A stretch of 64,000 nt of DNA from Macrostomum lignano (GCA_002269645.1 NIVC01001184.1:278540-342539); one strand, 5' to 3'. Shown: positions 5,301 through 64,000, numbered from the stretch's first letter. The notes: generated by a model not told the origin, from the letters alone. Translations and numbers: made by a program.

Positions 5301-5582
5301 ATGTCGGCCCAGTCGCCAGCCTCAATGTCGCTAATGGAACAGGAGCTGAATCAGGCTCAGATTCGAGAGATTTTCACCTCGTTCAATCGATCGCATCAGC
5401 GCTGCTTCACCGATTGCGTTAACAAATTCGACAGGCGAAGCGTTAGCGATTCGGAGAAGAATTGCGTAGCAAACTGCGTGGCCAAGTATATGAATACTAC
5501 TCAGAGAATTTCTATGCGATTCCAGGAGCACCAGGCCATGATCACGGGCGGCGGGGCTGTTGCTCAAGGCCAGGGAAAATAG
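5301..5582 (+). CDS. TIMM9: Mitochondrial intermembrane-space small Tim chaperone Tim9
   Basis: 93 aa with twin CX3C motifs (CFTDC, CVANC) and the TQRISMRFQE segment typical of Tim9. A polypyrimidine tract and AG acceptor (5298-5299) lie 1 nt before the ATG. Confidence 0.9.
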   Translation: MSAQSPASMSLMEQELNQAQIREIFTSFNRSHQRCFTDCVNKFDRRSVSDSEKNCVANCVAKYMNTTQRISMRFQEHQAMITGGGAVAQGQGK

Positions 5583-6807: not shown

Positions 6808-7983
6808 GAAAGCCAACCGTCTGCTGTAACAGTGGCAGCAACAGCGCCACAGTGCGTCGCAGCTGAAGCTTCACATTCATCTGAGAGCCAAGTTGAAGTT
6901 AACACACTAGTTGAACTAACAGATTGCAATCTTAACTTAGAAGCAAGCCAGGGTCGAAGTCAGCAAGCTAATAAACAACGATTTAAACAAGCGCGAGCGC
7001 CTCCGCCTGCAAAACAACAAGCTGAGGCATGCCAGTCATTGAATTTCCGTAATCCAGTAACCGCACGTTATCCAAACACGGATCAGTTGTGGCACAGAGT
7101 TGGAGAATTATCCCTATTCGATTGGTCAGTGTCCGGCAACGAGACTTGCATAGTAGTTCGCGGTCGAGGCTTCTGCATCGCTCTAGACGTTGGCGTCTGC
7201 CCGCCGCAGGCTGTGGACGCCGATCACGTGTTTATTAGTCACGGTCACGTTGATCATTGCGGCGCATTGCACATGCATATTAGAAAGCGTCAGTTGCTTA
7301 GACTGCCACCGGCTGTCTACTACATGCCCGAATGTCTAATAAATCCAATGCAATCTACATTGGCTGCATTTGTTACCATGCAAGGTGACAGCGACTATGC
7401 GGAAATGGTGTCCAACTCTAGACTTGTCGGTTTGAAAGTTGGCGATCGAGTTCCAATTAGTAATGACAATAATCAGCCTGCCGATGCAGCCAGTCTGACC
7501 TTGAGCGTATTCGCTACTGATCATCGGGTGCCCAGTTTGGGCTGCATATTGCGCCGTAGACACATCGTTTTGCTGCCTGAATGTCGTCGACTGAGCCAGG
7601 ATGAGCTGCGAGCACGGGTTGCTCAGGGCCTGCCAGTGCGCGGTCCCGAGTGGGAGCCGTTGCTAGGCTACACTGGAGACACCAGATTCAATGTATTCTT
7701 AACGCCGCAAGATCCGGACTTGTTGCGCGTTAGATTGCTCATTTCCGAGTTGACATTTTTGAGTGGTTCGATTGAACGCGCAGATAGTTTTGGACATTGT
7801 CACGTTGATCAATTTGCGCAGCATTGGAGACTGTTTGGCGCTGTGAATCGGCTTGTGTTTGTGCACTTTAGCAATAAGGTTTTGCCGGAAGAGATTCTTG
7901 AGCGGGTGTACTCAACTTTGCCTCAACAGCTGGGTCGCAGAGTCTACTGCGGACTGATTGCCAAGAGATTGCTGTATTCATGA
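6808..7983 (+). CDS. TM-type (plant/Thermotoga-like) short-form tRNase Z, paralog 1
   Basis: Motifs DWSVSGNETC, FISHGHVDHCG (MBL His motif), FATDHRVPS, GYTGDT, SELT, GHCH and HFS. Intronless. The ORF is open from the acceptor at 6806-6807; in-frame TAA at 6796; the first in-frame Met lies after the His motif. Confidence 0.8.
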   Translation, partial: ESQPSAVTVAATAPQCVAAEASHSSESQVEVNTLVELTDCNLNLEASQGRSQQANKQRFKQARAPPPAKQQAEACQSLNFRNPVTARYPNTDQLWHRVGELSLFDWSVSGNETCIVVRGRGFCIALDVGVCPPQAVDADHVFISHGHVDHCGALHMHIRKRQLLRLPPAVYYMPECLINPMQSTLAAFVTMQGDSDYAEMVSNSRLVGLKVGDRVPISNDNNQPADAASLTLSVFATDHRVPSLGCILRRRHIVLLPECRRLSQDELRARVAQGLPVRGPEWEPLLGYTGDTRFNVFLTPQDPDLLRVRLLISELTFLSGSIERADSFGHCHVDQFAQHWRLFGAVNRLVFVHFSNKVLPEEILERVYSTLPQQLGRRVYCGLIAKRLLYS

Positions 7984-9350: not shown

Positions 9351-9962
9351 TATGGTGGGAATAATTAATACTATTTATTAACTTAAAATATGAAAGGAAA
9401 TGTCCCAAATTTTGAGGATTTTCGACCACAGAGACATTTCGTGGACCGAGCAGTCCATCACGTTTCGTTATCTATGCCAGGCTAATTTTGCTCAGTCTGG
9501 TTTGGATTTAATTAATTGCTGTATGGACTGCTTGGGGTTGGTTGCCTTTTAACTGAAAAATTTATGGTTGTATATGAGTGTGTTCTTAGACGAATAAGAC
9601 GAAGACGAATAATAAAACAATGCCATGCATTTCAGCGTATTGGCTCTTGTATTTCTTTTGTTTTTGTTTACGTATTTTAGTTCTTACTAGGTATTTTACT
9701 TGTAGTAAAAAATCTTTTGTGTATAGTACTGACTCAGTAGCTAGTGTGGTTCGCTTAATATAAAAACTCCCTTAGAATAACAAAATAGCTTCTACCTAGG
9801 AATTCCGTGTGACAGTGACAGTAGCTCAAAAAGATATTCTTAGAGATATTTTTGAATCCTGAATTTCGCACAGCAATTCTGATGCTTAGAAAAACCAGTA
9901 GCTCAAAAAGACACTCACGCTACATATCGGCTGGTTTCCCATGATTTTTGTCCCTATTCCAG

Positions 9963-10835
9963 TGTCTGTCAGTGCCCGATCCCCTCCTGCCCCTGCCGGC
10001 ATGGATGGCTGGCCTGTTTGCCCTGCTAATCGCTGTTGGCTTTGTGCTCAGCCTGTACCTGTGGGAGCTCGGCTCGGCCAATGCTCGAGCTGGGGTTGAT
10101 CGCGACAATCCTAAAGTGATTATTCGCAGGTTTCTCGGCGTCTCAGCGGTTAGTTTAAGCGTGCTGATCTGCTATAGGTACTTTCTGATGAAGCCGACAG
10201 CTGCCAGCTGGTCAGATGTGCTTCAGCTGATCGGTCTGAGATGGTCCGGAATGCTGCCAGCTGTTGGAGCATCCTTGTTGCTAACCGCTATCCTGTTCAC
10301 TGGCCCGATTCTGCTAGCCTGGGAGACTGGCGACGGATTCTTTGATAGGGAACCGCTGCTGAGTTTGAGATGCTGCCGCACTTTAGTGTTGGCTCCGGTC
10401 ACTGAAGAGCTGTGCTTTCGCGCCCTGATGCTGCCGGTGCTGTGCGTTCATCTCTCTTGCACTCGGGCGGCCTTCCTGTCGCCGCTGTTCTTCGGCTTGG
10501 CGCATTTTCATCATTTGATTAACCGGCTACAGCGCGGCTATCCGCTTGTGCCCAGCCTGATTCAGGCAACGTTTCAATTCTCCTACACTTACATATTCGG
10601 CGTGTATTCGGCCTACTTGTATTTGAGAACTGGCCAGTTAGCTGCCGCCTGCGCCGCGCATTCCTTCTGCAATCTGATGGGTTTCCCAGATTTTGAGGCG
10701 CTGGCCAATCTGCGAGGAATTAAACTGGCGGTGCACGGCGGCGCCTTTGTTTTGGGATTGGTTGGTTGGCTGGCCCTGCTGGGGCGGCTGACCGAACCAG
10801 CGATGTTTGCTTCGCAGTGCGACTGCTTCTGGTAG
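9963..10835 (+). CDS. RCE1: CAAX prenyl protease 2 (Rce1)
   Basis: Multi-TM protein with APVTEELCFR, FFGLAHFHH and HSFCNLMGFP motifs. Intronless. The frame starts at the acceptor 9961-9962; first genomic Met at 10005. Confidence 0.9.
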   Translation, partial: CLSVPDPLLPLPAWMAGLFALLIAVGFVLSLYLWELGSANARAGVDRDNPKVIIRRFLGVSAVSLSVLICYRYFLMKPTAASWSDVLQLIGLRWSGMLPAVGASLLLTAILFTGPILLAWETGDGFFDREPLLSLRCCRTLVLAPVTEELCFRALMLPVLCVHLSCTRAAFLSPLFFGLAHFHHLINRLQRGYPLVPSLIQATFQFSYTYIFGVYSAYLYLRTGQLAAACAAHSFCNLMGFPDFEALANLRGIKLAVHGGAFVLGLVGWLALLGRLTEPAMFASQCDCFW

Positions 10836-12154: not shown

Positions 12155-13010
12155 GTTGCAGTAATCAGGGATTGTAGCGGGGTTGCAGTGTTGCAGTAAT
12201 CAGGGATTGTGTCGGGGTTGCAGTGTTGCAGTAATCAGAGATTGTGGCGGGGTTGCAGTGTTGCAGTAATCAGGGATTGTGTCGGGGTTGCAGTGTTGCA
12301 GTAATCAGGGATTGTAGCGGGGTTGCAGTGTTGAAGTAATCAGGGATTGTGTCGGGGTTGCAGTGTTGCAGTAATCAGGGATTGTGTCAGGGTTGCAGTG
12401 TTGCAGTAATCAGGGATTGTGTCGGGGTTGGAGTGTTGCAATAATCAGGGATTGTGTCGGGGTTGCAGTGTTGCAGTAATCAAGGATTGTGTCGGGGTTG
12501 CAGTGTTGCAGTAATCAGGGATTGTGTCGGGGTTGCAGTGTTGCAGTAATCAGGGATTGTGTTGGGGTTGCAGTGTTGCAGTAATCAGGGATTGTAGCGG
12601 GGTTGCAGTGTTGCAGTAATCAGGGATTGTGTCGGGGTTGCAGTGTTGCAGTAATCAGGGATTGTGTCGGGGTTGCAGTGTTGCAGTAATCAGGGATTGT
12701 GTTGGGGTTGCAGTGTTGCAGTAATCAGGGATTGTAGCGGGGTTGCAGTGTTGCAGTAATCAGGGATTGTAGCGGGGTTGCAGTGTTGCAGTATTCAGGG
12801 ATAGTGTCGGGGTTGCAGTGTTGCAGTAATCAGGGATAGTGTCGGGGTTGCAGTGTTGCAGTAATCAGGGATTGTGTCGGGGTTGCAGTGTTGCAGTAAT
12901 CAGGGATTGTGTCGGGGTTGCAGTGTTGCAGTAATCAGGGATTGTAGCGGGGTTGCAGTGTTGCAGTAATCAGGGATTGTGTCGGGGTTGCAGTGTTGCA
13001 GTAATCAGGG
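12155..13010. repeat. 35-bp minisatellite, ~24 units (gttgcagtaatcagggattgtgtcggggttgcagt)
   Basis: Read directly. Confidence 0.9.
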
Positions 13011-13188
13011 CAATTAATACACGTGCCGTTAATGGTATTTAGCTCATTGCATTATAATATATGAACTGAGTGTTTTAAAAAGAAGAAAATTCGTTGGAAT
13101 TCATGTACCATTGCGTAAGAATAAAGGCAGAAAATACAAAAACAGGTTTTGGCTGTCCTGAGCAGCTAGTTCAAGCCGAGGTGACACA

Positions 13189-14217
13189 ATGTCCCATAAT
13201 GACGAAGGTGCAGAGACCGCCAAAGCGGCCAGTTGGGTCGAGTTTTTCGCCGACCAACCGCAGAACAAGATGCGAGTGTTCGACTGGTCAGTGTCCGGCT
13301 TTGAGACTTGCATAGTAGTCCACGGTCCCAGCTTCCGTCTGGCGCTGGACATTGGCGCCTGTCCGCCGCAGGCAATCAGCGCCGATCACGTGTTCATTAG
13401 TCACGGTCACGTGGACCATTGCGGAGCACTGCACCAGCACATGCGCCGGCGTCAACTGGTAGGCCTACCACCAGCTACGTACTACGTGCCGGAGCATCTG
13501 GTCCAGCCGCTGATTGACATTGCTCGGCTATTCAGCGTCGTACATGGCGACGAAGACGAGGACAACGAAGGAGGTTCTGCGAAACTGTCGACGAAAGATA
13601 AAAAATCCAAGAAAGAGGATGCCACTGTCGCAGACGGTGCCTCAGCCGAAGCTGGGAGTGACGAAATAAGAATCTACGGCAAAATTGTAGCCGCTAGTCC
13701 GGGTGACGATTTGCAACTGTCAAAGAATCTTCGCATCCGTCCGTTCGCCACAGATCATCGAGTACCCAGCATTGGCTGTCTGGTGTACTGCAAGCGCAGC
13801 CAGTTGCTACCCAAATATGCCGGCCTGCCGGGTGCGGAACTTGCCGAACTGGCTCGCAACGGGGAACAGTTACGAGAGGCTCGGTGGGAACCCGCTATCG
13901 GCTACACAGGGGATACCAGATTCACTGTTCTAGCGTGTCCTCCCGAGCCCGACCTGCTCAAGGTTAGACTGTTAGTCTGCGAGCTAACCTACGTTGAAGG
14001 GCCGACAGATACAGCTGAGAAATACGGTCATTGTCATTTGCACGATTTCTCGTCGCGTGCAAATCTGTTTGACAATGTTGGCCAGCTGTTGTTTGTGCAC
14101 TTCAGTAGGCGGCACTCGCCTAACCAAGTGATTAACGCTGTGCTGACTTCGCTGCCAGAGGAGCTACGGTCTAAAGTCTACTGCGGACTCAATGCTCTGC
14201 GGTTCTATCGTTCCTGA
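13189..14217 (+). CDS. TM-type short-form tRNase Z, paralog 2
   Basis: 342 aa with DWSVSGFETC, FISHGHVDHCG, TM-type arm LLPKYAGLPGAELAEL, GYTGDT, CELT, GHCH and HFSRRH. Clearly paralogous to 6808-7983. Confidence 0.85.
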   Translation: MSHNDEGAETAKAASWVEFFADQPQNKMRVFDWSVSGFETCIVVHGPSFRLALDIGACPPQAISADHVFISHGHVDHCGALHQHMRRRQLVGLPPATYYVPEHLVQPLIDIARLFSVVHGDEDEDNEGGSAKLSTKDKKSKKEDATVADGASAEAGSDEIRIYGKIVAASPGDDLQLSKNLRIRPFATDHRVPSIGCLVYCKRSQLLPKYAGLPGAELAELARNGEQLREARWEPAIGYTGDTRFTVLACPPEPDLLKVRLLVCELTYVEGPTDTAEKYGHCHLHDFSSRANLFDNVGQLLFVHFSRRHSPNQVINAVLTSLPEELRSKVYCGLNALRFYRS

Positions 14218-14448
14218 TGATACTGACTTATTTTACTATTCTATCTTACACTAAATAAAGTTTATACTGATGCTTTGCCATTGTTTTCTCAGACAGTTTT
14301 TTTAATAAAAAGTTTTAAACATCGTGTCTTTAATTAATTTAACTTTCTATTTTACAAAATAAACTGTAAAAATTTCAGCTAGAATTTCACTGCCGTAACT
14401 ACAAAACTGAGCTGATTTCGATTCGGAGCTGCACTCCAAACATTAATT

Positions 14449-15174
14449 ATGACTGCTGAGGTTAAACATGCTGCGGGGCTGGACAGCCGGCAGCCTGCTA
14501 TGAAAGAGGTGGGTTTGGCACTTTCTGTAGGAGTGGCCTGTTGTGTGCCTTGTCTGTCTGCCCTGTCCTATTCTGTCTGTGTGTTCTGTCTGCCCTGTCC
14601 TGTTCTGTCTGCGTGTTCTGCCTGTCCTATTCTGTCTGTCTGTTCTGTCTGCCCTGTCCTGTTCTGTCTGTGTGTTCTGCCTGTCCTGTTCTGTCTGTGT
14701 GTTCTGTCTGTCCTGTCCTGTTCTGTCTGTCTGTTCTGTCTGCCCTGTCCTGTTCTGTCTGTGTGTTCTGTCTGCCCTGTCCTGTTCTGTCTGCGTGTTC
14801 TGCCTGTCCTATTCTGTCTGTCTGTTCTGTCTGCCCTGTCCTGTTCTGTCTGTGTGTTCTGCCTGTCCTGTTCTGTCTGTGTGTTCTGTCTGTCCTGTCC
14901 TGTTCTGTCTGTCTGTTCTGTCTGCCCTGTCCTGTTCTGTCTGTCTGTTCTGTCTGTCCTGTCCTGTTCTGTCTGTGTGTTCTGCCTGTCCTGTTCTGTC
15001 TGTGTGTTCTGTCTGCCCTGTCCTGTTCTGTCTGTGTGTTCTGTCTGCCCTGTCCTGTTCTGTCTGTGTGTTCTGTCTGCCCTGTCCTGTTCTGTCTGTG
15101 TTCTGTCTGTCCTGTCCTGTTCTGTCTGTCTCTTCTGTCTGTGTGTTCTGCCTGTCCTGTTCTGTCTGTCCTGT

Positions 15175-15207
<33 letters not shown>

Positions 15208-15269
15208 GTCTGTTCTGTCTGCCCGGTTCTGTTCTGTTTGTCTGTCTGTCTGTCTCTCTGTCTGTCTGG

Positions 15270-15323
<54 letters not shown>

Positions 15324-15326
15324 GGT

Positions 15327-15423
<97 letters not shown>

Positions 15424-15454
15424 GGTTGTTTGTCTGTCTGTCTGTCTGTCTGTG

Positions 15455-15487
<33 letters not shown>

Positions 15488-18400
15488 GGTTGTCTGTCTG
15501 TCCTGCAGACCTGTATGATCCACCTTACTACTCCATTTGCATTCCATCCCAGCTGCAATTCGCTGTCAACATGACCTGTCAATCATGCGCCGACTCGGTC
15601 AGTCGAGTTCTATCCAGTCACCAGCCGGCAAGCGACTTCGCGGACATCCGAATTCAACTGACTGAACAGCGGGTCATCCTGCGCACTTCGCTGCACGTTG
15701 ACTCGGTGCTGGAGCTGCTGGAGACCACCGGCTGTCGGGCTTTGCTGCAAGGCGTTGGCACAGCCAGCCAGGGCATGCGGGGTCAGGACTTCGCATCTGG
15801 CGTCGTACAATTGGAATCAGTTTATACTACTAATACTAGTAGTGTCCAGGGAGTAGTTCGAATTTTGCAGCCAGATGATCAGCAGTGCCTGTTCGATGGC
15901 ACAGTGGACGGTCTGGAGCCCGGCAGTTGGTACAGCCTCGAGGTCCGTCAGGGCGGTGATCTGTCTGGGGGGTCTGACACATGCGGCCCGGTGTATAATG
16001 ACGGCTCTGATGATGCACAGGTGCGTTCTGTGTTATATATCCCTGTTTTTGTCTGTCTGCATCTTGGGGTGTACGCTCTCTCACCTTACAGCATTCGCTC
16101 TCTCACCTTACAGCATCCGCTCTCTCACCTTACAGCATTCGCTCTCTCACCTTACAGCATCCGCTCTCTCATAAGTTAAGGCATCCGCTCTCATCTTACA
16201 GCATCCGCTCTGTCTCCTTACAGCATCCGCTCTGTCACCTTACAGCATCCGCTCCCTCATCAGTTACAGCATCCTCTCTCTTAGCTTACAGCATCCGCTC
16301 CCTCATCAGTTACAGCATCCTCTCTCTTAGATTACAGCATCCGCTCCCTCATCAGTTACAGCATCCTCTCTTTTAGCTTACAGCATCCGCTCTCTCACCT
16401 TACAGCATCCGCTCTCTCACCTTACAGCATCCGCTCCCTCATCAGTTACAGCATCCGCTCCCTCATCAGTTACAGCATCCGCTCCCTCATCAGTTACAGC
16501 ATCCGCTCCCTCATCAGTTACAGCATCTGCTTCCTCATCGGTTAGAGCATCCGCCCCTTACTGTACTAGTATCTTTCAGCATCTGTCTCGTTTTGCGAAC
16601 TCAAAAATATCTGATAGAGTTATTTCTTTAGACAGGTTTAGCTGTAAATGTTTTCAGACTGCCAAAAAGACATACAATATACCAGTACATAGAAACATAC
16701 AAAAAATCAACTAACAACAGCGTCTCCATGGCAACTCAAATGCCTACGGCCTGACCAGCGTACTGGCGGACGAGTTGACCTGCCCGCGGCCTCATCTAGT
16801 CCCAGTCGCCTCAGGTTTCCTATCCAACGATTTGCGACCGCTAAGCGGCTTGCAAAAGTTTCTGGCCGCTAATTTTCCCGCCCCAGACTTGCGGCATCTG
16901 AAGCGGGCCGCCCGGCCGCCTCCGCGCCTGACTGCAGTCGCCGATTTCGCGTTCTCCTTTGCCACGCCGCCGACTTACCTAATTTGGAATGTTCTGAAGA
17001 ATTTTCAACGATTTGGAGACCTAAATTAGATAGCGTAGAAATTGTTATGGCGCCGGGTAGTGCGCCGCGTACCAGGCAACAATGGGAGCTCACTTCCGGT
17101 TATTGGCCCTGCTCGTTTCATGCTGACAAGTCTATCGAATCGGAGCTGTCGTTGGATTGCTTTACTAAAGCTGAAGGTGTCGCTTGTCTGAGGCATATGC
17201 TGCGCTCGCTGGCTCTCGGTCGAACTTCCGGTTCCACGTCTGCCGATACTTCCGGTCTGAAACCCGCTTCCGGTTTCACGTCTGCCGATACTTCCGGTTT
17301 GAAACCCGCATCCACTTCCGGTTCCACGTCTGCTGATACTTTCGGCCTGAAACCCGCTTCCATTTCCGGAGCCGCGTCTACCGATACTTCCGGTCTGAAA
17401 CCCGGTTCCACGTCTGCTGATACTTCCGGTCTGAAACCCGGTTCCACGTCTGCTGATACTTCCGGTCTGAAACCCGGTTCCACGTCTGCTGATACTTCCG
17501 GTCTGAAACCCGGTTCCACGTCTGCTGATACTTCCTGTCTGAAACCCGCTTCCACTTCCGGTCCTGCATCCGCTTCATCTTCTTCTGCATTCGCCGCTCT
17601 GCGCCTCCCAGTCCCCCAATCGGCCTGCCTAATCGTGGACCCTCGCAACGACACGGTGCTGGTGGAATGCCAAGACGAGCGCCACCTCTGCCCGACCTGG
17701 CACGCCACCCTCCGGGCCGTCCAACAGCTGGGCGGCCGAGGCGACTACCTGTGCACCGGCCTGGACGCTTACGTCACCGACGAGCCGTGCCACATGTGCG
17801 CTATGGCGCTGCTGCACTCCCGGGTGGCTCGGGTTTTCTACTGCCGACCGAGGCCGCGCGGCGCCCTCGGCAGCATCGCCAAACTGCACTGCCATCCGCG
17901 ATTGAATCATCGGTTCCGCGTGTACCGACTTTTCCCTCTGAGTGCGGCTCGAACTGGGGAGAGTTGACGGTTGGATTGCGATTCTTGCTTGCTCTTTAAC
18001 CTGGCCCTTTGTCAGCCACCGTTGTCCTTCAGTTGGTGTAGCAACCTTTCAGTTGGTGTAGCAACCTTTCAGTTGGTGTAGCAACCTTTCAGTTGGTGTA
18101 CCTACCCTTCAATTGGTGTAGCTACCCTTCAGTTGGTGTAGCTACCCTTCAGTTGGTGTAGCTACCCTTCAGTTGGTGTAGCAACCCTTTAGTTGGTGTA
18201 GCAACCCTTCAGTTGGTGTAGCTACCCTTCAGTTGGTGTAGCTACCCTTCAGTTGGTGTACCTACCCTTCAGTTGGTGTAGCAACCTTTCAGTTGGTGTA
18301 GCTACCTTTCAGTTGGTGTAGCAACCCTTCAGTTGGTGTAGCAACCCTTCAGTTGGTGTAGCTACCCTTCAGTTGGTGTACCTACCCTTCAGTTGGTGTA

Positions 18401-20010
18401 CCTACCCTTCAGTTGGTGTACCTACCCTTCAGTTGGTGTAGCAACACTTCAGTTGGTGTAGCTACCCTTCAGTTGGTGTAGCTACCCTTCAGTTGGTGTA
18501 GCTACCCTTCAGTTGGTGTAGCTACCCTTCAGTTGGTGTAGCAACCCTTCAGTTGGTGTAGCTACCCTTCAGTTGGTGTAGCTACCCTTCAGTTGGTGTA
18601 CCTACCCTTCAGTTGGTGTACCTACCCTTCAGTTGGTGTACCTACCCTTCAGTTGGTGTACCTACCCTTCAGTTGGTGTACCTACCCTTCAGTTGGTGTA
18701 GCAACACTTCAGTTGGTGTAGCTACCCTTCAGTTAGTGTACCTACCCTTCAGTTGGTGTAGCTACCCTTCAGTTGGTGTAGCTACCCTTCAGTTGGTGTA
18801 GCTACCCTTCAGTTGGTGTAGCTACCCTTCAGTTGGTGTAGCTACCCTTCAGTTGGTGTAGCTACCCTTCAGTTGGTGTAGCTACCCTTCAGTTGGTGTA
18901 GCTACTCTTCAGTTGGTGTAGCTACCCTTCAGTTGGTGTAGCTACCCTTCAGTTGGTGTAGCTACCCTTCAGTTGGTGTAGCTACCTTTCAGTTGGTGTA
19001 GCTACCCTTCAGTTGGTGTAGCTACCCTTCAGTTGGTGTAGCTACCCTTCAGTTGGTGTAGCTACCCTTCAGTTGGTGTAGCTACCCTTCAGTTGGTGTA
19101 GCTACTCTTCAGTTGGTGTAGCTACCCTTCAGTTGGTGTAGCTACCCTTCAGTTGGTGTAGCTACCCTTCAGTTGGTGTAGCTACCCTTCAGTTGGTGTA
19201 GCTACCCTTCAGTTGGTGTAGCTACTCTTCAGTTGGTGTAGCTACCCTTCAGTTGGTGTAGCAACCCTTCAGTTGGTGTAGCTACCCTTCAGTTGGTGTA
19301 GCTACCCTTCAGTTGGTGTAGCTACTCTTCAGTTGGTGTAGCTACTCTTCAGTTGGTGTAGCTACCCTTCAGTTGGTGTAGCTACCTTTCAGTTGGTGTA
19401 GCAACCCTTCAGTTGGTGTACCTACCCTTCAGTTAGTGTACCTACCCTTCCGTTGGTGTAAGCAACCCTTCAGTTTTTCCACTACCCAGTCTACTCTGTA
19501 CCCTAATCTTCTGCGTTCTACTTGTTCTCCTGCGCATAAATCTATGGCATAAATAAAAGCCAATTGAAGTGAAAAAATTGACGCCTGCATTTATAGCATT
19601 TTGTCTCGCTTCTTATTGGGACACTTTAAAACAATTAATGCAAATTTTTATTACAATGTTCGTATCATACTACTTTTTCGTTAGTTATTTTTTCAATCAA
19701 TCCTTCCCAGTCTGACGATCCCTCCGGACTGGTCGGTCGAGTTCACACTGGGCCGAGTGGGCGGCTTCGATTCAGCTTGATTTCGAATCGACTTCGCTTA
19801 TGGAATCTTGTGGGCCGCTGCCTCACAGTGAGCAAGTCTGCCGGTTGCAGCGAGAACGTCTGCGCCGCAGGCATTGTGGCGCGATCTGCAGGGCTATTCG
19901 CCAACGACAAACGAATCTGCTCCTGCGATGGCGTTGAAATTTGGAGCGAACGCGACGTGCCATCGGTTGGGGCTGGTAGAGCCGCTGCTGCGGCCGCTTT
20001 GAAAAAGTGA
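14449..20010 (+). CDS. CCS: Copper chaperone for superoxide dismutase, 3 exons
   Basis: Exons 14449-14508, 15553-16020 and 19711-20010, all joined in phase 0 by GT-AG introns. Domain [11 protein letters not shown], a SOD-like domain II, and domain [28 protein letters not shown]. Confidence 0.9.
14540..15505. repeat. CTGT-based micro/minisatellite filling CCS intron 1
   Basis: Read directly. Confidence 0.9.
16075..16555. repeat. ~22-bp minisatellite (tacagcatccgctctctcacct) in CCS intron 2
   Basis: Read directly. Confidence 0.85.
16721..17967 (+). CDS. ADAT3: tRNA adenosine-34 deaminase non-catalytic subunit, nested in CCS intron 2; one apparent frameshift near 16908
   Basis: N-terminal VLADEL...HLKR in one frame. 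[23 protein letters not shown] (pseudo-catalytic), [14 protein letters not shown] and LNHRFRVY in the next frame. Adding one T (aag cgg g[t]c cgc) restores HLKRVR and a 415-codon frame. Confidence 0.8.
18026..19465. repeat. 20-bp minisatellite, ~70 units (agttggtgtagctacccttc)
   Basis: Read directly; lies between the ADAT3 stop and an AATAAA at 19552. Confidence 0.9.
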
Positions 20011-20268
20011 ATGCATTCAGTCTGACGATATGTATCGAAATAATATTTTTATTGCACTTTAAAAATTTATGAGCTTTGCTCTGCAGGAAACTTGAGTACG
20101 AGTCATTATTTTACAAGCGTACAAATTAGATCTTATGTAGCCGATATGTATCGGAAATTGTCTAGTTACTTAAAATCGTTATCAGAATTGATTTAACTTG
20201 CAGCCTAATTTTATACGAGCTATGCCACCATTTGGAGTCGGATTTGGAATTTTTTTTATCTCAATGGT

Positions 20269-21499
20269 CAGGGAAAGAAAACAGAGCATTACTGCGGGCC
20301 AGAGGAGGGGAGAAAGGAGATAGAGGAATAAGAGGAGAGGAGATGAAAGATAAAATAGGAGAGAAGGAAAGGGAGAGCTGATGGAGAAGATGAGAGAGAG
20401 TAGAGAAGAGAGAGGAGTGGAGAGGAGAGAAGGGAAGGGAGAGGAGAGAAGGGAAGGGAGAGGAGAGGAGGGAAGGGAGAGAAGAGGAGGGTAGGGAAGG
20501 GAGAGGAGAGAAGGGAAGGGAGAGGAGAGGAGGGAAGGGAGGGAAGGGAGAGGAGAGGAGAGAGGGAAGGGAGAGGAGAGGAGAGAAGGGAAGGGAGAGG
20601 AGAGGAGAGAAGGGAAGGGAGAGGAGAGGAGGGAAGGGAGAGGAGAGGAGAGGAGAGGAGAGAAGGGAAGGGAGAGGAGGGAAGGGAGAGGAGAGGAGAG
20701 AAGGGAAGGGAGAGGAGAGGAGAGAAGGGAAGGGAGAGGAGAGGAGGGAAGGGAGAGGAGAGGAGAGGAGAGGAGGGAAGGTAATGGAGAGGAGAGGAGA
20801 GAAGGGAATGGAGAGGAGAGGAGAGAAGGGAAGGGAGAGGAGAGGAGAGAAGGGAAGGGAGAGGAGAGGAGGGAAGGGAGAGGAGAGGAGAGGAGAGAAG
20901 GGAATGGAGAGGAGAGGAGAGAAGGGAAGGGAGAGGAGAGGAGAGAAGGGAGAGGAGAGGAGGGAAGGGAGAGGAGAGAAGGGAATGGAGAGTAGAGGAG
21001 AGAAGGGAAGGGAGAGGAGAGGAGAGAAGGGAAGGGAGAGGAGAGGAGAGGAGGGAAGCGAGAGAAGAGGAGGGAAGGTAATGGAGAGGAGAGGAGAGAA
21101 GAGGAGAGGAGAGAAGGGAGAGGAGAGGAGGGAAGGGAGAGGAGAGAAGGGAATGGAGAGGAGAGGAGAGAAGGGAAGGGAGAGGAGAGGAGGGAAGGTA
21201 ATGGAGAGGAGAGGAGGGAAGGGAGAGGAGAGGAGAGGAGGGAAGGGAGAGGAGAGAAGGGAATGGAGAGGAGAGAAGGGAAGGAAGAGGAGAGGAGGGA
21301 AGGAAGAGGAGAGGAGAGAAGGGAAGGGAGAGAAAAGGAGAGGAGAGGAGGAGTGGAGAGAAGGGAAGGGGAGACGAAAGGAGACTAGAGAAGGGAGCTA
21401 GAAGAGACGTTCACCTTGAGCGGGCCGGATTGCTATTGTGAATTTTAAAATTAAAACCCGGATACAGAGGCTCTGCGGGCCGAAGTTTGCGGACCCCTG
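20269..21499. mobile_element. GA-core hAT MITE copy with ~1.1 kb expanded purine tract
   Basis: Shares actgcgggccagagg and ccttgagc-ggcc-gattgctattgtga...agtttgc-gacccctg with 2393-2805. The left TIR is degenerate. Confidence 0.7.
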
Positions 21500-23297: not shown

Positions 23298-25583
23298 ATG
23301 CTGACGCCTCGTTCTTCGTTCCGCTCCATCGTCTATCAATTCGCCAACGATTCGAGCGTTCACGGGCTGTCCCGTTTAGTTGGCAATCGGCCAATTCACC
23401 TCAAACTGTGCTGGTGTCTCAGCTGCCTCCTGCTAGCCGGCTGGTTCGCCTTCTCGCTGTCAATCTGCGTAGGTAAACTGCTCAGCCGCAGGCATAGCAC
23501 CGCTATTTACACTGAAGACGTGGATTTCCAGTTCCCGGATGTGTACATCTGCCCGACTAGTCCGTTCTCGGGCAGCTATTCGGTCAGCCTGAGCCAGTCG
23601 GGTGCTGGGCAGCTGCGGACTAAACTGAAGGAAGTGGAAAGCTGGCTCAATGGAAGTCAGGCGAGTGCATGGCGGTTGGGGTGGTGGGTTATTGTGCAGT
23701 GTACATATGTGCATGTACAGTCTGGGTGGGTGTCTATGATGGCTCTGGTTTAGATAGATTAAATAATTAAGGGAAGACCAACTGACTCAGGAGTGAATGG
23801 GGGCAAATTGGGGTGAATGAGGGCGGATGGAGTGAATTGAGGCGAATGAAGTGAATTAAGGCGGATTGAGTTAATAGAAGTGAATGGGTTGCGGATGGAG
23901 TGAGTGGGTTTGCGGATGGAGTGAATGGGTTGCGGATGGAGTGAATGGGGTTGCGGATGGAGTGAATGGGGTTGCGGATGGAGTGAATGGATTGCGGATG
24001 GAGTGAATGGGGTTGCGGATGGAGTGAATTGGGCTGTTGGTGTGAATGAGTTCCGCATAGAGTGAACAGCTAGGATCACCATAAACCCCAATTCGCAGAC
24101 CGCAGCCAGCGGACAAGTGTCCGACCAAATAAAAGTGGCCGTGAACTCGCTGCCCTACCAGCTGCTGGCGGACACTATTGGCCATAGACTATCGCAGATG
24201 GTCCCCCTATCCAGATTCCGAGGCGCCTGGACTGTTGGCCACCTGATGGACGGCAGCCTGCGCCAAGTTCGCTGGGAGCCATTCTACCATCCGGAGCACC
24301 TGCGCTGCGCTAAACTGTTATTATCCGACCTTGAACAGCTAATGCTGAGTCTACCGATGAATCATCTGGAGATTCTATTAATAGCTGATTCGGCTACCCA
24401 GCTATTCTCACTGACCGACACGATTCATTTCTACGGTTCCGACGGCCCGAGACGGATTGCGGTGCCGGCAGCAAAGTGGAGCTTAGCCAATGGGTTTGAT
24501 GGCTTCAACTCGGCGGGGCTGAGGCTGCTGCTCACTGAGAAGAACACGTATCCTGGTGCACAGTCCGCTGGGATGCTGCTGTCGCCTGGGCTCGCTGTTG
24601 AAGCTAGAATCAGCATGCTGGAGACGAGGCACAATGTTGCCGAGTTCGGCGAAGAAGACTGCCTCGGCAAAGAGGTTGCCGGGCGCACCGTGTACTTTCT
24701 TAATCCTTACGATCATGCTAATCCGTACGAGTTTCGGTACAGCCAGGATTACTGCTATTATGCGGGTGAGTGGGTGGGGCTTGAGGTAGTGTATGGTTGT
24801 GGTAACCCTAACCCTAGACCCTAACCCCACCCCAACCCTGAACCGATCAACCGCTTGCCAGAACTCCTCAGGCGGCAGTTTGGGCACTTCAACTGCAGCG
24901 AAGGCCAGTACCCCGCGCCGATGCCCGTCGTCAGCCCCGGCGGCGATGGCAAAGTGACTCTGGGCAGCTGCTACAACTGGTCTCTAGCCGCATCAATGTC
25001 ATTCGGAGACGGCCTCAATCTCACCACTTTGAGAGCCGCACCGCGAGACGCGGCTCTCGCCTGCGCCAAGCAAAGACCCTGCCAACGACGGACCTACAGC
25101 GTGGCCTGGTCTGCGGCCATGTGGCCAAGCGAATCCGACGCCGTCCCTCTGGTTGCAGCTTTCCGCAGTCGCCTACAAGAAAAGCCGGCCGAACCGAAGC
25201 CGCTGTTTCACTATCTGGTCAATAACTGCTCGGTTGGAGATGCCAAATTGTACAGCAGTCTGCGGGCTCAGGCCATGCTGCTGAAGCTGTCGGCAGCGAA
25301 CCAGCTGTCCAGCCGGGTGCAGGTGTCCCTAGCTTACACCAGCTACGAGATGTTCGCAGAGGTTGGCGGCATACTTGGCTTGTATCTGGGCTGCTCTATT
25401 CTAACCATAGTTGAAGTGCTGGAATTGTTGCACAATCTATTAGCGCTGATGCTGTGTCCGACTACTAGCAGTAGTGATGACTGGGAGGAGCAGCCGAAAT
25501 CTGACCAGGCCTCGGATTGGAAAGAAAATTCAACACCGGCAACCAACGAGATGTCGCTGCAGAGTCTCGAGGCCGACGGATGA
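23298..25583 (+). CDS. DEG/ENaC (ASIC-like) sodium channel subunit, 3 exons, ~583 aa
   Basis: Exons 23298-23660, 24099-24765 and 24862-25583. FANDSSVHG (HG motif), TM1, FPDVYIC and TM2 AEVGGILGLYLGCSILT. The first intron appears to be GC-AG. Confidence 0.85.
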
Positions 25584-33900: not shown

Positions 33901-34108
33901 TGTCCGGGTGATCATTCACACTCTGCAGGGCCATCTCAACAGCTGGCCAGCAGGCAATACCGCCAGCCCAGTCGCCAGACATTGGGAACAGGGCACCGAT
34001 ATGTAGAAGGTCCAACGGTTTTTCTCTCTGATTAGATGCCAGACAAAGACTAGCAGTGGACAAGATCAGCGACCAAGTAAGACTCACAATACAGCTGGAT
34101 TGCCGCAT
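27922..34108 (-). CDS. GABBR1: Metabotropic GABA-B receptor subunit 1, 8 exons, 883 aa, no sushi domains
   Basis: Exons 34108-33432, 32598-32535, 32434-32249, 31812-31667, 31477-30919, 30040-29672, 28906-28646 and 28311-27922 join in frame via GT-AG introns. Signal peptide, GALFPMSG, SYGSSSPALS, FFRTHPSA, 7TM with AYETRNVK and DSRFAGMAVYN, and a C-terminal coiled coil. Confidence 0.92.
28990..29635. repeat. 16-bp minisatellite (gacaggtagagaggcg) in a GABBR1 intron
   Basis: Read directly. Confidence 0.9.
30240..30842. repeat. 21-bp minisatellite (gacactgacacagcatctaaa) in a GABBR1 intron
   Basis: Read directly. Confidence 0.9.
31904..32240. mobile_element. Truncated GA-core MITE copy in a GABBR1 intron
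   Basis: agcgcatgact-cgg...GA tract...ccttgagcaggctggattgctattgtgaagtttcaaaggaccc, shared with 2393-2805. Confidence 0.7.
32672..33368. repeat. 35-bp minisatellite (gggctgttgaagcccagattagggaatggtttaaa) in GABBR1 intron 1
   Basis: Read directly. Confidence 0.9.
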
Positions 34109-36029
34109 GGCAGATTTTTGTTTTACTGTTTACTTTTTGGAATTTTGTAGATGGCAGCAATTAATTGATACAATTAATATAGGAATCTATCTCTTTTTAT
34201 AGTTCTATAGAGTATCATAGTAATAAAATATTCATATTAAAATTTAAACTCAGGTGCAAATCCAGAAAATTTTGAATGGGGGGCGCAGATTACTAAAGGT
34301 ACATGTACAATATCTATGTACATGTACACTATATGTACATGATAATGTGTATTTTCCATATAAAACATAAAAATTCAAAGTTGACATGGGGCGCATGCCC
34401 TGTGCATCTCCTCTCTCTGAATCTGCTACTGATTTAAGTTAAAATAAATTCAAAATACAACAAATCAGCTTTAAACTTTATGACATTACAAATACTAAAA
34501 AAGTCAATTAGCAAAAAAACAATATAAATACCACTGAGTATATACTATTGATATATAGGATGGTTAAATTTAATAGGTTAACATAGAATTGATCTATTTT
34601 TAAATTTAGCATGAAAAGCTATGATAATTACAATAGCAAAACTAATGAATCTTTATTAGACTTCATTACAGGTATTAAAACTAGCTAATTTTAAATTTAA
34701 ATTTATTTGAAGCTAAACATTACACCAAACTAATGAATTTCTATGAATTTGGTTTTGTCTAGCTTCCATAGAAAATATAATAACTTAGTCATAATTAAGT
34801 ATTAAAACCCTCATTGTAATTTAGGAAAGCTTTTTATGGATTTAATTTACAATTAAGGCAAAAATAAGATAGACTGCTAGATTACCTATCATAAACTCAG
34901 AAATAAATTCTAAAGTGATACTTTACAAACTGTGTAATCTTTTGAAACTTTTTGGTCCTTGCTTTTTAGATACTTTTAAACAATAACCAACTGAGTGAGT
35001 TTGAAGCTATATAAAATTATTGTAGGGCCTATCTAAAATTAGATTAAAAATCCAAATATCACTTAAAAATTTGATCAAATACTTTGCTGCAAATTTGACA
35101 ACTTTACTTCAAAAAGGCCGAAAATTCACTTTTAACAGATACACAAATAATACAAAAAAGATACAGAAAAAGCATGTGTGCATGCATGGAATGTATATAA
35201 TGATGACTCAAAGCCCGAAAATAAAAAAATTAACGATAAAAACAATAAATACTGAATTAGTGCTTTATATTTTGGACCAATACAGAATTCTTGATATTGT
35301 TTAGAGAAGAAGCGCAATTAAGAACAAATTTGGTGTGAATAAGAGATTAGATGTAAAATGATTGAAGCACATTTGAACATTTGTTATAGCGCTTTGATAA
35401 AAACGAAATATTTATAAATGTTTATATAAAGAAAATAAGTTACCATAAAAATTCCCAATAATGTTCATAATAAAAGATGAAAAATAAATGTCCCGAAATA
35501 AATGACTAAAATTCTTAATTACGAAAGTACTAAATAAATGGATGTTAGCATACAATTTTAGGTTTAACTACCGTTTTGTTGACGTAACAGACTTGGAAAA
35601 ACCTCAAATTTTTTATCGTTATATACTGCTAGTGGTATTTGAGTAAAACTTAATTATCCTTGCCTAAAGTTTTTGAATGCACTACTTGTAGATCGTACAC
35701 TTAATTTACACAATACTATACATGTATAAGAAGAGCGATGTTACTGGTACTTCGTCACTATATCATTAATAAAGGTGCAATTCAAGTATAGTAGCTAGTA
35801 ATCCCATCTTAATATCAAGTCAAAGTGTGCTTTCTAGTTATCGATTCTGATTTTTCGTTCTCCAATTACATTTTGTTATCGTGCAGTCGTAGTGTACATG
35901 TGCAAGCACAACTTTACATTTTGAAAAAAACAAAAGTTTGGATAATTCCTATACGATTCCTATACACCATGCATGATTTATTCTACCTCTCAAGCTGACA
36001 TAATCATGTGCACTTTTACTTTGTAAATA

Positions 36030-55778: not shown

Positions 55779-56177
55779 ATGACACACGTTACACATATGC
55801 AAAATCTGAATGAATTGCAGGTAGGAGACCCAGTTGAATACCGAGGTGAGGGGCTTTTTGATGTGGTTGGAACAGCAGCAAATTTTGTTAAAGACAATAT
55901 GGGGCTTATAGGGCAAGCTGGCTCTGCAGCAGGCTCTATAACAAATGCTGTAAAAGGAGGAATTGAAGCAGCTAGAGCGGCAGAAGAACTAAAGAAATTG
56001 AGAGATTTTAACGACACCCTCTCACAAATAAATGCAATAAAAGATTTAAAGCTGGCACAAGCCGCACAACCAACAGAAACCCCCACGAAAAGCGCACCAA
56101 TAAGTAATAAAGATATTCAGGATTTTAATAAAATGTTAAATACTATTAAAGGTGGAAAAGGATTAAAGAAATTTTAA
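55779..56177 (+). CDS. Putative virion core protein (Gly-motif protein)
   Basis: 132 aa with GEGLFD, an amphipathic N-terminal half and a terminal KGGKGL; resembles protease-processed core proteins of polinton-like viruses. Confidence 0.55.
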   Translation: MTHVTHMQNLNELQVGDPVEYRGEGLFDVVGTAANFVKDNMGLIGQAGSAAGSITNAVKGGIEAARAAEELKKLRDFNDTLSQINAIKDLKLAQAAQPTETPTKSAPISNKDIQDFNKMLNTIKGGKGLKKF

Positions 56178-56187
56178 CAATATAAAA

Positions 56188-57183
56188 ATGGGCTCAGTTA
56201 ATGATGATGAAAACCGGTTATATTTTATAGGAGAAATTGTAGATACTTTAGATCTTGATGATAATAAGCAAACCCACACAATGTTAAAAAGATTGGATCG
56301 ATTAGGTAAAAAGTTTGACTACGACATCGATACATTTAAACTCGCAGCAAAATATGCACAAGAAGGAAGGCCAATATCCTTTAAGAATCGCGGCAGAAAT
56401 TATAGGTTGACAGACTCCGATGTGAAATTTTTAATGGAGACTCACACTAAAAAGGACGGCGGATTACTACCCATTCTACCGCTTCTTTTAGGGCTTGGCG
56501 CAGCTGGAGCAGTCGGTTTAGCCGGAAAAAGAATTCATGATAATGTAAAACAGCTAGGAGAGTTAAGAGCGAAACAGGGGGGAATCTTGCCCCTTGCAGC
56601 TTTGCTCCCAATAATTTTTGCAGGAATTGGAGCAGCTGGAGGAGTTGCTGGCGGAGCAGCTGGAATTGCAAAAGCAGTAAATGACAAAAAAGCTGCGGAC
56701 GAAAAAGCTAAAAGAGAGGCCGAATTTCAAAGACAGCAAATAACGCAGGACGCACAATTTAAACAAAAACTTATCGATACAATTAATAGTAGTTCAGCAA
56801 CAGCTGAGCAAAAAAGAAATGCAGAAGCTAGGTTATCAGCTGGAAAAGGGTTAATACTAAAAGGATCAAATCATGGCAATGGTTTACTTTTACAAGGAAC
56901 AACCCAAGGAAGTGGAGTTGTCGCAGATAAACTACACGAATTTGGTCAAACTTTAGAAAAAACGGGCGAGAAAGCTAAAGGATTTTTTGACAATATTGGA
57001 TCCAATTTTAGACCAGCTGTTCAGAAAATTTTTAATAAATTAGGAAAAGATTTTAATATCATTGAAAAACACGACGGAAGCGGATTATATCTCGAAATGA
57101 GACCAAAAGCAGGTTCAGGAATTTTCTTAAATTCAAACGTTATGGGCAATGGATTGCTATTACCAAAAGCAGATCTCGAATAG
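56188..57183 (+). CDS. Adenovirus pX(Mu)-like core/membrane protein with duplicated hydrophobic domain
   Basis: KDGG|LLPILPLLLGLGAAG and KQGG|ILPLAALLPIIFAGIGAAGGVAGGAAGIAKAVND resemble the pX C-terminus (RGG|ILPLLIPLIAAAIGA). Six G[KNS]G-hydrophobic repeats follow. Confidence 0.65.
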   Translation: MGSVNDDENRLYFIGEIVDTLDLDDNKQTHTMLKRLDRLGKKFDYDIDTFKLAAKYAQEGRPISFKNRGRNYRLTDSDVKFLMETHTKKDGGLLPILPLLLGLGAAGAVGLAGKRIHDNVKQLGELRAKQGGILPLAALLPIIFAGIGAAGGVAGGAAGIAKAVNDKKAADEKAKREAEFQRQQITQDAQFKQKLIDTINSSSATAEQKRNAEARLSAGKGLILKGSNHGNGLLLQGTTQGSGVVADKLHEFGQTLEKTGEKAKGFFDNIGSNFRPAVQKIFNKLGKDFNIIEKHDGSGLYLEMRPKAGSGIFLNSNVMGNGLLLPKADLE

Positions 57184-57267
57184 GCTCCTGGGGGGAGGGT
57201 CTGGACACCAAAAACACAAAATTAAAAAATCAATAATTCAAACATTATATAAATTTTATTCTATAAA

Positions 57268-57459
57268 ATGGAAGCAATTTTAGCTCAAATCGACAACCCT
57301 GAACTTAGAGCACAATTAATAGCTCAAATCGATGCACAACGAATTGCCGATAGGGCTGAAATAGAAGCAAGAATTAGGGCAGAAAATGAGATACGTTTAG
57401 AAAGACAATTAAATGATATTAATAACCCCAACCACAAGGACAAAATGGAGCTGAAGTAA
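57268..57459 (+). CDS. 63-aa ORF, probably the frameshifted N-terminus of polB
   Basis: The polB frame is open from 57426 and overlaps this ORF. One extra A in the A4 run at 57442-57445 fuses them into 1327 aa. Confidence 0.5.
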   Translation: MEAILAQIDNPELRAQLIAQIDAQRIADRAEIEARIRAENEIRLERQLNDINNPNHKDKMELK

Positions 57460-57509
57460 TATATATAGATATAGATATAAATACAAATTATAAAGAATAT
57501 TTTAAACAA

Positions 57510-61250: not shown

Positions 61251-61377
61251 AATCCGCGACCCTTCGGGCGGAAAAAAACTAAAGCATGTAATTGTTTAAG
61301 CATAATATCCATTTCGATTTCATATAATATTGAAGGCCAATTTTCCTCGCAGTCGTCAGGGTAACTTAAACAATCCT

Positions 61378-61614
61378 TTATTTTTTTCCTAAGTTTTTTA
61401 TTTTTCTAACCAATCTATCTATTTCAATTTCAATTACTGTTTCAGCATAAGCAATTGCAGATTTAATAAAACGTTTTCTTTTATCCATTTCATATCGGAT
61501 GGGAAACATATCGTCCCCATACTCATGATATTTCTGAGATATAATTATATTTATTTTTTTATTAATATCATTAAGTTCACGCTCTTTAGTGATAAGGATT
61601 TTTATCGTATCCAT
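61378..61614 (-). CDS. Hypothetical viral protein (78 aa, helical)
   Basis: ATG-initiated ORF tightly packed with its neighbours. Confidence 0.5.
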   Translation of the reverse strand: MDTIKILITKERELNDINKKINIIISQKYHEYGDDMFPIRYEMDKRKRFIKSAIAYAETVIEIEIDRLVRKIKNLGKK

Positions 61615-61629
61615 TTTCTTATAAAAAAT

Positions 61630-61962
61630 TTAGTCTTCGTCGTCATCCTCCCAAACAGCCGCCAATTTTACAGTCCTATCACTCTTTTTATTATTTGTTT
61701 GTTTTAGTTTAAATTGCAATCCACCCTCGTTGCAGTATTTCATAACAAACGCTTTAGGTTTATTAATAACTAAAACAGGAAAATTTTTAACATCATCTCC
61801 GCTTAGACATAAAATTTTTTGCCCATCTAATTGTAAAAATATTGATTGAAGCCCAATAAATTTAACCTGTCTCAAACATATAATATTATATTCTTTATTC
61901 TCCAACATATTGGGTGTGAGATAATTAATCACATTAGAATCGGTTTTGAACCAGCTCTCCAT
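61630..61962 (-). CDS. Hypothetical viral protein with acidic tail (possible ssDNA-binding protein)
   Basis: 110 aa, beta-rich pattern, ends AVWEDDDED. Confidence 0.5.
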   Translation of the reverse strand: MESWFKTDSNVINYLTPNMLENKEYNIICLRQVKFIGLQSIFLQLDGQKILCLSGDDVKNFPVLVINKPKAFVMKYCNEGGLQFKLKQTNNKKSDRTVKLAAVWEDDDED

Positions 61963-62020
61963 TTTTAATCTAAAAAAATAATAAAAAAATGAAAGACATT
62001 TACGATGTAATAAATGTAAT

Positions 62021-62464: not shown

Positions 62465-62484
62465 AACTAAAACAACAATTAAGT

Positions 62485-63446: not shown

Positions 63447-63504
63447 TTATTATATAAATATTTATGTTTATCGCCCCATAGGTCGCAGCATTAGCTGATT
63501 TAAG

Positions 63505-63999: not shown

Positions 64000-64000
64000 A

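Follow-up and report, generated by a model that had tools for sequence, protein, structure and literature searches.

The window analyzed here is a stretch of 64,000 nucleotides from the free-living flatworm Macrostomum lignano (positions 278540-342539, the end portion of the 342,539-bp contig NIVC01001184.1, assembly GCA_002269645.1, also termed Mlig_3_7), and it carries, inside intron 2 of the CCS gene and on the same strand, a single-exon gene that is identified by its sequence as ADAT3/Tad3. ADAT3 serves as the non-catalytic partner in the tRNA A34 deaminase and is required for inosine at the tRNA wobble position. The nested gene has no start codon of its own ahead of its conserved N-terminus, and the most likely mechanism by which it would acquire one is trans-splicing of the M. 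lignano spliced leader (SL) to the acceptor at 16720, a reading to which we give about an even chance of being correct. The window copy (L002), which is byte-identical to the window over 4449-30010 (contig 282988-308549), was compared with two further copies of the locus, L001 (NIVC01001119.1) and L003 (NIVC01000206.1). The elements of the host and nested genes, counted from the first nucleotide of the window, are the following:

14449-14508, plus strand: coding part of CCS exon 1 (60 nt, 20 aa), ending at the phase-0 donor GAG/GTGGGT
15553-16020, plus strand: CCS exon 2 (468 nt), encoding HMA (MTCQSC) plus the first half of the SOD1-like domain II, ending at the phase-0 donor CAG/GTGCGT
16021-19710, plus strand: CCS intron 2 (3690 nt), host of ADAT3
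16719-16720, plus strand: AG acceptor of the ADAT3 exon, context AATCAACTAACAACAG/CGTCTC, with a CTAAC branch-like motif and without a pyrimidine tract
16721-17967, plus strand: ADAT3 single coding exon, comprising the N-terminal domain, a repeat linker and the deaminase domain, with the TGA at 17965-17967; out of frame from 16911 in the window copy
16911-16913, plus strand: C-run in the ADAT3 N-domain, CCC here and CCCC in L001 and L003, which shifts the frame
17224-17555, plus strand: in-frame coding minisatellite in the ADAT3 linker, with 36/48-nt units encoding 12-aa repeats
19552-19557, plus strand: AATAAA, the presumed ADAT3 poly(A) signal; no other canonical signal occurs from the ADAT3 stop to CCS exon 3
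19711-20010, plus strand: CCS exon 3, following the acceptor TTCCCAG/TCT, encoding the remaining half of domain II together with domain III (CSC), and ending at a TGA stop

The host gene is on record. When 14449-14508, 15553-16020 and 19711-20010 are joined, the translation is letter-for-letter that of PAA71141.1 (BOX15_Mlig003964g3, 275 aa) and is 98% identical to BOX15_Mlig003964g2. The product contains the Pfam domains HMA and Sod_Cu together with the motifs MTCQSC and CSC, and aligns with human CCS (6fp6_B) in a single alignment of residues 14-270 (E=1e-42) that spans the exon 2/exon 3 junction, which bears out the exon boundaries at 16020 and 19711, and the split of domain II between them, that had been proposed in the initial annotation of this DNA. 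The CCS mRNA that skips ADAT3, in which 16020 is joined to 19711, is itself an annotated, RNA-seq-guided model.

The acceptor that had been predicted at 16719-16720 is directly followed by an ADAT3-like frame. In the product of the intact copies, both the N-domain and the deaminase domain align with mouse ADAT3 (7nz7_B, E=1.8e-36), as two separate stretches, and mouse ADAT3 chains are the best matches in the PDB (E about 1e-36); the product also matches Pfam PF00383 (E=8e-11). In L001 and L003, residues 38-170 of the N-domain align to residues 52-186 of mouse ADAT3, and in the window the frameshift at 16911-16913 interrupts this domain. Across 74 aligned homologs, 13 columns are invariant, and the M. 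lignano protein retains every one of them, including the zinc ligands H277, P305, C306, and C309 (H...PCxxC). The position of the catalytic Glu is occupied by Thr (motif WHATL), and the homologs have V in 30 cases, A in 19, T in 12 and E in none; the absence of Glu at this position indicates the inactive ADAT3 subunit, not ADAT2. The linker minisatellite differs in copy number among the three copies, such that the intact ORFs span 375 codons in L003 and 477 in L001. A composite ADAT3 query gave high-identity matches to M. lignano proteins only. No second, diverged M. lignano ADAT3 turned up in the protein-collection search, and no tRNA or other ncRNA genes were found in CCS intron 2.

No in-frame ATG occurs in the first 109 codons of the ADAT3 exon in any of the three copies; the first is at codon 110 (17047). 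An in-frame TAA lies at 16712, three codons 5′ of the first codon of the exon, and reading of the sequence between 16021 and 16720 revealed no ATG-bearing mini-exon able to feed the acceptor at 16720 in frame. A conserved N-terminus that is open without an ATG, preceded by a TAA, means that full-length ADAT3 must take its AUG from a different exon. Aligned with P0004, a complete animal ADAT3, the product is homologous from its residue 10 onward (residue 17 of P0004), and 58 residues precede the HLKR motif, where the median among homologs is ∼69. The near-typical N-terminal length, together with homology from residue 10, indicates that the exon begins almost at the natural N-terminus and that its first 109 codons are coding. 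The 35 nt 5′ of the acceptor are identical in all three copies. A short out-of-frame ORF is also present at 16729-16755, starting 9 nt into the exon; ribosomes that passed over an upstream start codon would be caught there.

The ADAT3 acceptor is in phase 0, and an AUG in this phase could come from three sources: the last three bases of the SL, CCS exon 1, or CCS exons 1 and 2 together. M. lignano has a single SL of 35 nt, CGGTCTCTTACTGCGAAGACTCAATTTATTGCATG, which ends in ATG (...TTGCATG) (PMC8629364), and this AUG would be in phase 0 with the ADAT3 ORF at acceptor 16720. Approximately 30% of M. lignano genes are trans-spliced to this one SL, and ∼15% are in operons, where the length of the spacer (repeats subtracted) has its mode near 100 bp; the enriched trans-splice acceptor motif is YTNCAG (PMC8629364). 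In flatworms, the SL AUG is used as an initiator, and in the cited account it is needed by more than 40 Schistosoma mansoni cDNAs (Cheng, 2006, cited in PMC9851317). The SL is favored over the two CCS-derived sources given the frequency of trans-splicing in M. lignano, the documented initiation at SL AUGs in flatworms, and the typical length of the ADAT3 N-terminus that would result. It is also favored in that an ATG-less nested ORF is of the kind that an annotation pipeline would lose, and non-exhaustive searches found no stand-alone ADAT3 protein. The suggestion in the initial annotation that ADAT3 may be trans-spliced out of the intron thus suits this animal, in which about 30% of genes are trans-spliced to an SL ending in ATG and the ADAT3 ORF depends on an external AUG in just that phase.

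In the proposed mechanism, the SL would be trans-spliced onto the acceptor at 16719-16720, with its AUG opening the ADAT3 ORF in phase 0, and the 3′ end of the ADAT3 mRNA would be formed at the single AATAAA at 19552, about 135-160 nt before CCS exon 3. The CCS mRNA would arise when donor 16020 is joined to 19711 instead, and ADAT3 would then be removed with the intron; from a shared precursor, each transcript would yield either CCS or ADAT3, and not both. Alternatively, the ADAT3 precursor may originate from its own promoter within 16021-16720, in which case read-through of the nested poly(A) signal would be the only link between the two genes. We infer the trans-splicing, initiation at the SL AUG, the site of polyadenylation, and the mutual exclusivity of the two products from the arrangement of the sequence.

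Several points weigh against SL addition at this site. The acceptor reads CAACAG, which is off the YTNCAG motif, and lacks a pyrimidine tract. In-phase cis donors, at 14508 and 16020, lie upstream of it, and in nematodes, intronic acceptors with upstream cis donors favor cis-splicing. Most flatworm SL acceptors are also used in cis (PMC12582326). The ADAT3 ORF is broken in the window copy. Finally, no stand-alone M. lignano ADAT3 protein was found in non-exhaustive searches of protein collections, and the mRNA start consequently has no independent annotation. The word-index protein search used here overlooked the CCS-containing model P0002 when queried with CCS, such that its negative results are provisional. 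Further look-ups had the same outcome: no ADAT3 protein is listed inside the CCS range at the three NCBI loci, and exact look-ups of 14 guessed ADAT3 products (5′-partial, SL-Met and Met110-start forms, fusions to exon 1 or to exons 1 and 2, and truncated window forms) gave no match. Neither ADAT3 nor Mlig003964 was found in the supplements of M. lignano transcriptome papers, and a full-text search did not find Mlig003964. No SL RNA gene is present within the window.

Two other readings were rejected. The remaining YTNCAG sites upstream of the exon (16574, 16652, and those in the array units) are out of frame or run into the TAA, and a retrocopy of an SL-bearing mRNA was set aside because no SL-like sequence lies 5′ of the ADAT3 exon.

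The strongest alternative, to which we assign a distinctly smaller probability, is that the CCS unit has ADAT3 as an alternative terminal exon, which receives its AUG by cis-splicing, either from 14508 to 16721 (adding 20 aa) or from 16020 to 16721 (adding 176 aa, comprising the HMA domain and half of domain II); the locus would then have shared 5′ exons, like ChAT/VAChT or human ADAT3/SCAMP4. The initial annotation had pointed out that both upstream donors (14508 and 16020) are phase 0, as is the ADAT3 acceptor, and the exon lengths of 60 and 468 nt agree with this; both fusions are open, and the acceptor sits in an intron 3′ of real donors. Phase agreement is nevertheless weak evidence, phase 0 being the commonest phase. 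Flatworm acceptors are widely common to cis- and trans-splicing (PMC12582326), and human ADAT3 shares a promoter with SCAMP4 (PMC2568002). With exon 1 added, approximately 78 residues would stand ahead of HLKR, which is still inside the range of homologs. The 176-aa extension with its half β-barrel would, on the other hand, be an outlier, as none of 10 long ADAT3 homologs has HMA or Sod_Cu. Three UniProt models from the ML2 assembly (P0001, P0002, and P0005) join ...DDAQ directly to RLHGNSN..., which speaks for this reading; however, the ML2 models also fuse tRNase Z and read through frameshifts, and for this reason look like ab initio artefacts. The exact products of exon 1::ADAT3 and exons 1-2::ADAT3 from L001 and L003 are not in a collection of 15 billion proteins, and the product recorded for the gene is CCS (275 aa).

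Six ML2 models in all (P0001, P0002, P0003, P0005, P0012, and P0168) are chimeras of tRNase Z, CCS, and ADAT3 pieces, some of them in wrong frames. The merging of operon genes into one model is a known problem.

The initial annotation had described a complete ADAT3 gene in CCS intron 2. The same-strand nesting and the identities of both genes stand, and the completeness of the frame in the window does not: the frame that opens at the acceptor runs into a stop at codon 102 (17027-17029), apart from lacking an in-frame ATG before codon 110, and the rest of the gene lies in a +1-shifted frame that is open over 16873-17967. A single difference at the C-run, GGGCCGCCCGGCC in the window versus GGGCCGCCCCGGCC in L001, explains the broken frame. 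From the same acceptor, the ORF is unbroken in L001 (477 codons) and in L003 (375 codons), and the alignment to mouse ADAT3 passes straight through the C-run in the CCCC frame. A GT-AG intron joining the two window frames was considered, and all 21 candidates had poor sites or entailed the loss of conserved residues; given the 1-nt difference, this explanation was dropped.

The assembly is a Canu build of PacBio reads with Pilon polishing (PMC5730564), and CCC may be either an assembly (homopolymer) error or a very recent pseudogenizing mutation in one of several near-identical copies, with the two about equally probable. UniProt models from the ML2 assembly show both readings, and P0001 combines L001-type substitutions with the CCC-type frame even though L001 itself has CCCC, which makes the C-run look error-prone or polymorphic. 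Intact ADAT3 copies with the same nested layout exist, whichever origin CCC has.

A somewhat weaker alternative, which we regard as unlikely, follows from this frameshift: the window ADAT3 could be a dead copy with the function resting on other copies, or all copies could make only a protein truncated to Met110, or none. The frameshift at 16911-16913 falls inside the conserved N-domain, the ML2 gene models P0001, P0003, and P0005 carry the same shifted reading, and the non-exhaustive protein searches returned no annotated M. lignano ADAT3 protein, all of which would agree with a dead copy. The single base aside, however, the window copy nearly equals the intact L003 copy, with one replacement and one silent change over 888 nt of non-repeat coding sequence beyond the C-run and no other defect. 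The apparent instability of the C-run itself also speaks against a dead copy, as does the failure of a second, diverged ADAT3 to appear in the protein-collection search. As to truncation, the 109 codons before Met110 are open, conserved, and homologous to the ADAT3 N-domain, an argument for their translation.

That the nesting is an assembly artefact, with ADAT3 misplaced between the two halves of CCS, is highly improbable: the locus is rich in tandem arrays, with several near-identical copies in a PacBio/Canu/Pilon assembly, yet three separate contigs share order and splice sites while differing in array lengths, and models from the independent ML2 assembly also connect CCS and ADAT3 sequences. 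The initial annotation had called for the arrangement to be checked in other haplotypes and species and had named misassembly as a danger. On all three contigs, ADAT3 lies in CCS intron 2 on the same strand, with identical CCS splice sites and the same gene order, and the recurrence of this nesting on separate contigs rules misassembly out.

Over window positions 13000-20300, the three copies are mosaics of one another. The window is nearly identical to L003 in the first part of intron 2 and in ADAT3; for tRNase Z, the spacer, CCS exon 2, and the region 3′ of CCS, it is L001 that nearly equals L003. This mosaicism suggests gene conversion or recombination between copies of a hidden-polyploid genome. 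Between the window and L001, divergence is 0.8% in non-repeat ADAT3 coding sequence, 1.7% in CCS and tRNase Z coding sequence, and ∼4%, with indels in addition, in unique non-coding flanks; the difference between the ADAT3 coding sequence and the flanks indicates that ADAT3 is under constraint.

Array lengths vary among the three copies while gene order and splice sites stay the same. Besides the ADAT3 minisatellite, the introns of CCS contain the following arrays in the window:

14509-15552, plus strand: CCS intron 1, between exons 1 and 2
14551-15505, plus strand: TGTC-rich tandem array, occupying most of CCS intron 1
16074-16554, plus strand: 22/46-nt tandem array that lies past the CCS exon 2 donor and ahead of the ADAT3 acceptor, with TTACAG in nearly every unit (19 YTNCAG matches)
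18026-19475, plus strand: 20-nt array, CCTTCAGTTGGTGTAGCTAC, of ∼72 units, in the presumed ADAT3 3′ UTR

The last of these is the 1.4-kb array of the initial annotation, here resolved into 72 copies of a 20-nt unit. Counted by motif, the 20-mer is present 69 times in the window, 7 times in L001 and 24 times in L003. The first part of intron 2 measures 700 nt in the window, 814 in L001, and 1014 in L003. Essentially every unit of both intron-2 arrays has a YTNCAG match (19 TTACAG and 70 CTTCAG), where the window average is ∼4 per kb; none of these matches would yield ADAT3 in frame, and they may serve as decoy acceptors. Past the arrays, the AATAAA at 19552, which had been placed about 150 nt before the CCS acceptor, is confirmed as the only canonical signal after the ADAT3 stop, and lies 159 nt before exon 3 in the window and 159-163 nt across the three copies.

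Upstream of CCS, the same strand carries a gene for the short form of tRNase Z, followed by signals expected at the end of one cistron and the beginning of the next:

5301-5582, plus strand: Tim10, upstream neighbor
6832-7983, plus strand: second tRNase Z short-form paralog, upstream of the gene at 13189-14217
9948-10835, plus strand: Rce1-like gene, upstream neighbor
13189-14217, plus strand: tRNase Z short form, single exon, with a metallo-β-lactamase fold and HGHVDH; matches RNase ZS1 (7xgt, E=2e-43), with weak matches to Pfam Lactamase_B
14254, 14304, and 14358 (the first 14254-14259), plus strand: AATAAA signals past the tRNase Z stop, putative 3′ end of the upstream cistron
14373-14378, plus strand: TTTCAG, putative SL acceptor of CCS, ∼120 nt past the first AATAAA; no other YTNCAG occurs from the tRNase Z stop to the CCS ATG

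The tRNase Z and CCS genes are separated by a same-strand spacer of 231 nt. On the other two contigs, the pair is named Mlig003964 g1/g2 and g5/g6; a shared Mlig prefix denotes transcriptional units clustered at 95% identity, from which the gN genes were cut using SL and poly(A) evidence (PMC5730564). The naming and the layout lead us to infer co-transcription of tRNase Z and CCS, and CCS itself is probably trans-spliced at the putative SL acceptor. The tRNase Z ORF at 13189-14217 is intact (342 aa); an exact look-up returned no match for NIVC01001184.1, and the counterparts on the other two contigs are recorded.

A further, more tentative proposal, which we consider rather unlikely as a whole, is that the tRNase Z-CCS unit is a polycistron from which the intronic ADAT3 would be released by SL trans-splicing and intronic polyadenylation, with the SL as its only start codon. 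If true, the CCS:ADAT3 ratio would be set by competition among cis-splicing, trans-splicing, and cleavage, and one promoter would drive two tRNA-maturation enzymes, tRNase Z and ADAT3. The initial annotation had drawn, from a shared precursor or from trans-splicing of ADAT3 out of the intron, a coupling of copper/SOD1 maturation to tRNA editing. This coupling is unsupported, the more obvious functional neighbor of ADAT3 being tRNase Z; flatworm operons group unrelated genes, and the locus alone indicates no link between copper handling and tRNA editing. As an observation on the cluster, two tRNA-maturation functions, 3′ processing (tRNase Z) and A34 editing (ADAT3), occur in it on the same strand.

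Downstream, no AATAAA or ATTAAA was found within the first 390 nt past the CCS stop, and a purine-rich array of 1 kb (AGAGG / 19-24-nt units, 20331-21397) starts ∼320 nt past it. Further 3′ of CCS, three ORFs on the plus strand at 23298-25583 match successive parts of PF00858 (amiloride-sensitive sodium channel), as exons of an ASIC/ENaC-like gene. The G+C content is 28-33% at 34001-36000 and 56001-64000, versus 40-55% elsewhere in the window.

The nested ADAT3 ORF represents a concrete correction to the M. lignano annotation: the lack of a genomic start codon and the position inside another gene are the likely reason that no stand-alone ADAT3 protein was found there. Furthermore, the locus offers a compact natural test case, in an animal capable of transgenesis, for the SL AUG as initiator outside parasites, for the choice of an intronic acceptor between a cis donor and the SL, and for read-through of a nested poly(A) signal by the host gene.

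Each component of the arrangement has a counterpart among known systems. The flatworm ORFs that depend on the SL for their start codon (slORFs; PMC9851317) are alike in having an SL that ends in AUG, an ORF that starts at the AG acceptor in phase 0, and no genomic ATG for a conserved N-terminus. They differ in that their acceptor marks the 5′ end of a free-standing gene, whereas that of ADAT3 lies inside the intron of another gene, and SL addition at this acceptor is a proposal. In the literature searched, we found no description of the CCS/ADAT3 locus or of SL-AUG use in M. lignano. The SL-resolved operons of flatworms (PMC8629364, PMC5730564, PMC12582326) are similar in the same-strand clustering, the 231-nt tRNase Z-CCS spacer, and the single family name of the transcriptional units, and also in the gap from AATAAA to the next acceptor, which is ∼120-160 nt at both junctions and near the ∼100-nt spacer mode. 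Classical cistrons stand in tandem, however; here the ADAT3 cistron is intronic, and its release would destroy the host mRNA from that transcript.

Sense nesting is found in other animals as well. The initial annotation had held that nested genes are usually antisense, a premise that is weaker than stated, since a survey of mouse and human describes the orientations as “broadly similar” in frequency (PMC11694760). VAChT lies in the first intron of ChAT, in the same orientation and with shared 5′ exons (PMC3053374); that locus resembles the present one as an intronless gene sense-nested in a host intron, and the phases here would also allow shared 5′ exons and alternative processing. The cholinergic products differ in acting in one pathway, and CCS and ADAT3 do not. 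Human ADAT3/SCAMP4 (PMC2568002) is comparable in that ADAT3 is not a free-standing transcription unit, and differs in its host, which is SCAMP4 instead of CCS. In H13/Mcts2 (PMC13309782; survey in PMC11694760), a sense-nested gene likewise has its own intronic poly(A) signal, which the host must read through; the mammalian nested gene has a promoter and involves transcriptional interference, whereas in M. lignano, trans-splicing would offer a promoter-free route. At a leech ADAT3 locus, CCS is absent from the surrounding 10 kb, which indicates that the nesting is not ancient. Sense nesting, SL-AUG initiation, and SL-resolved operons are thus all already known; what is particular to this locus is how they are combined, with an essential gene that lacks a start codon nested in an intron whose host gene in turn belongs to an operon-like unit.

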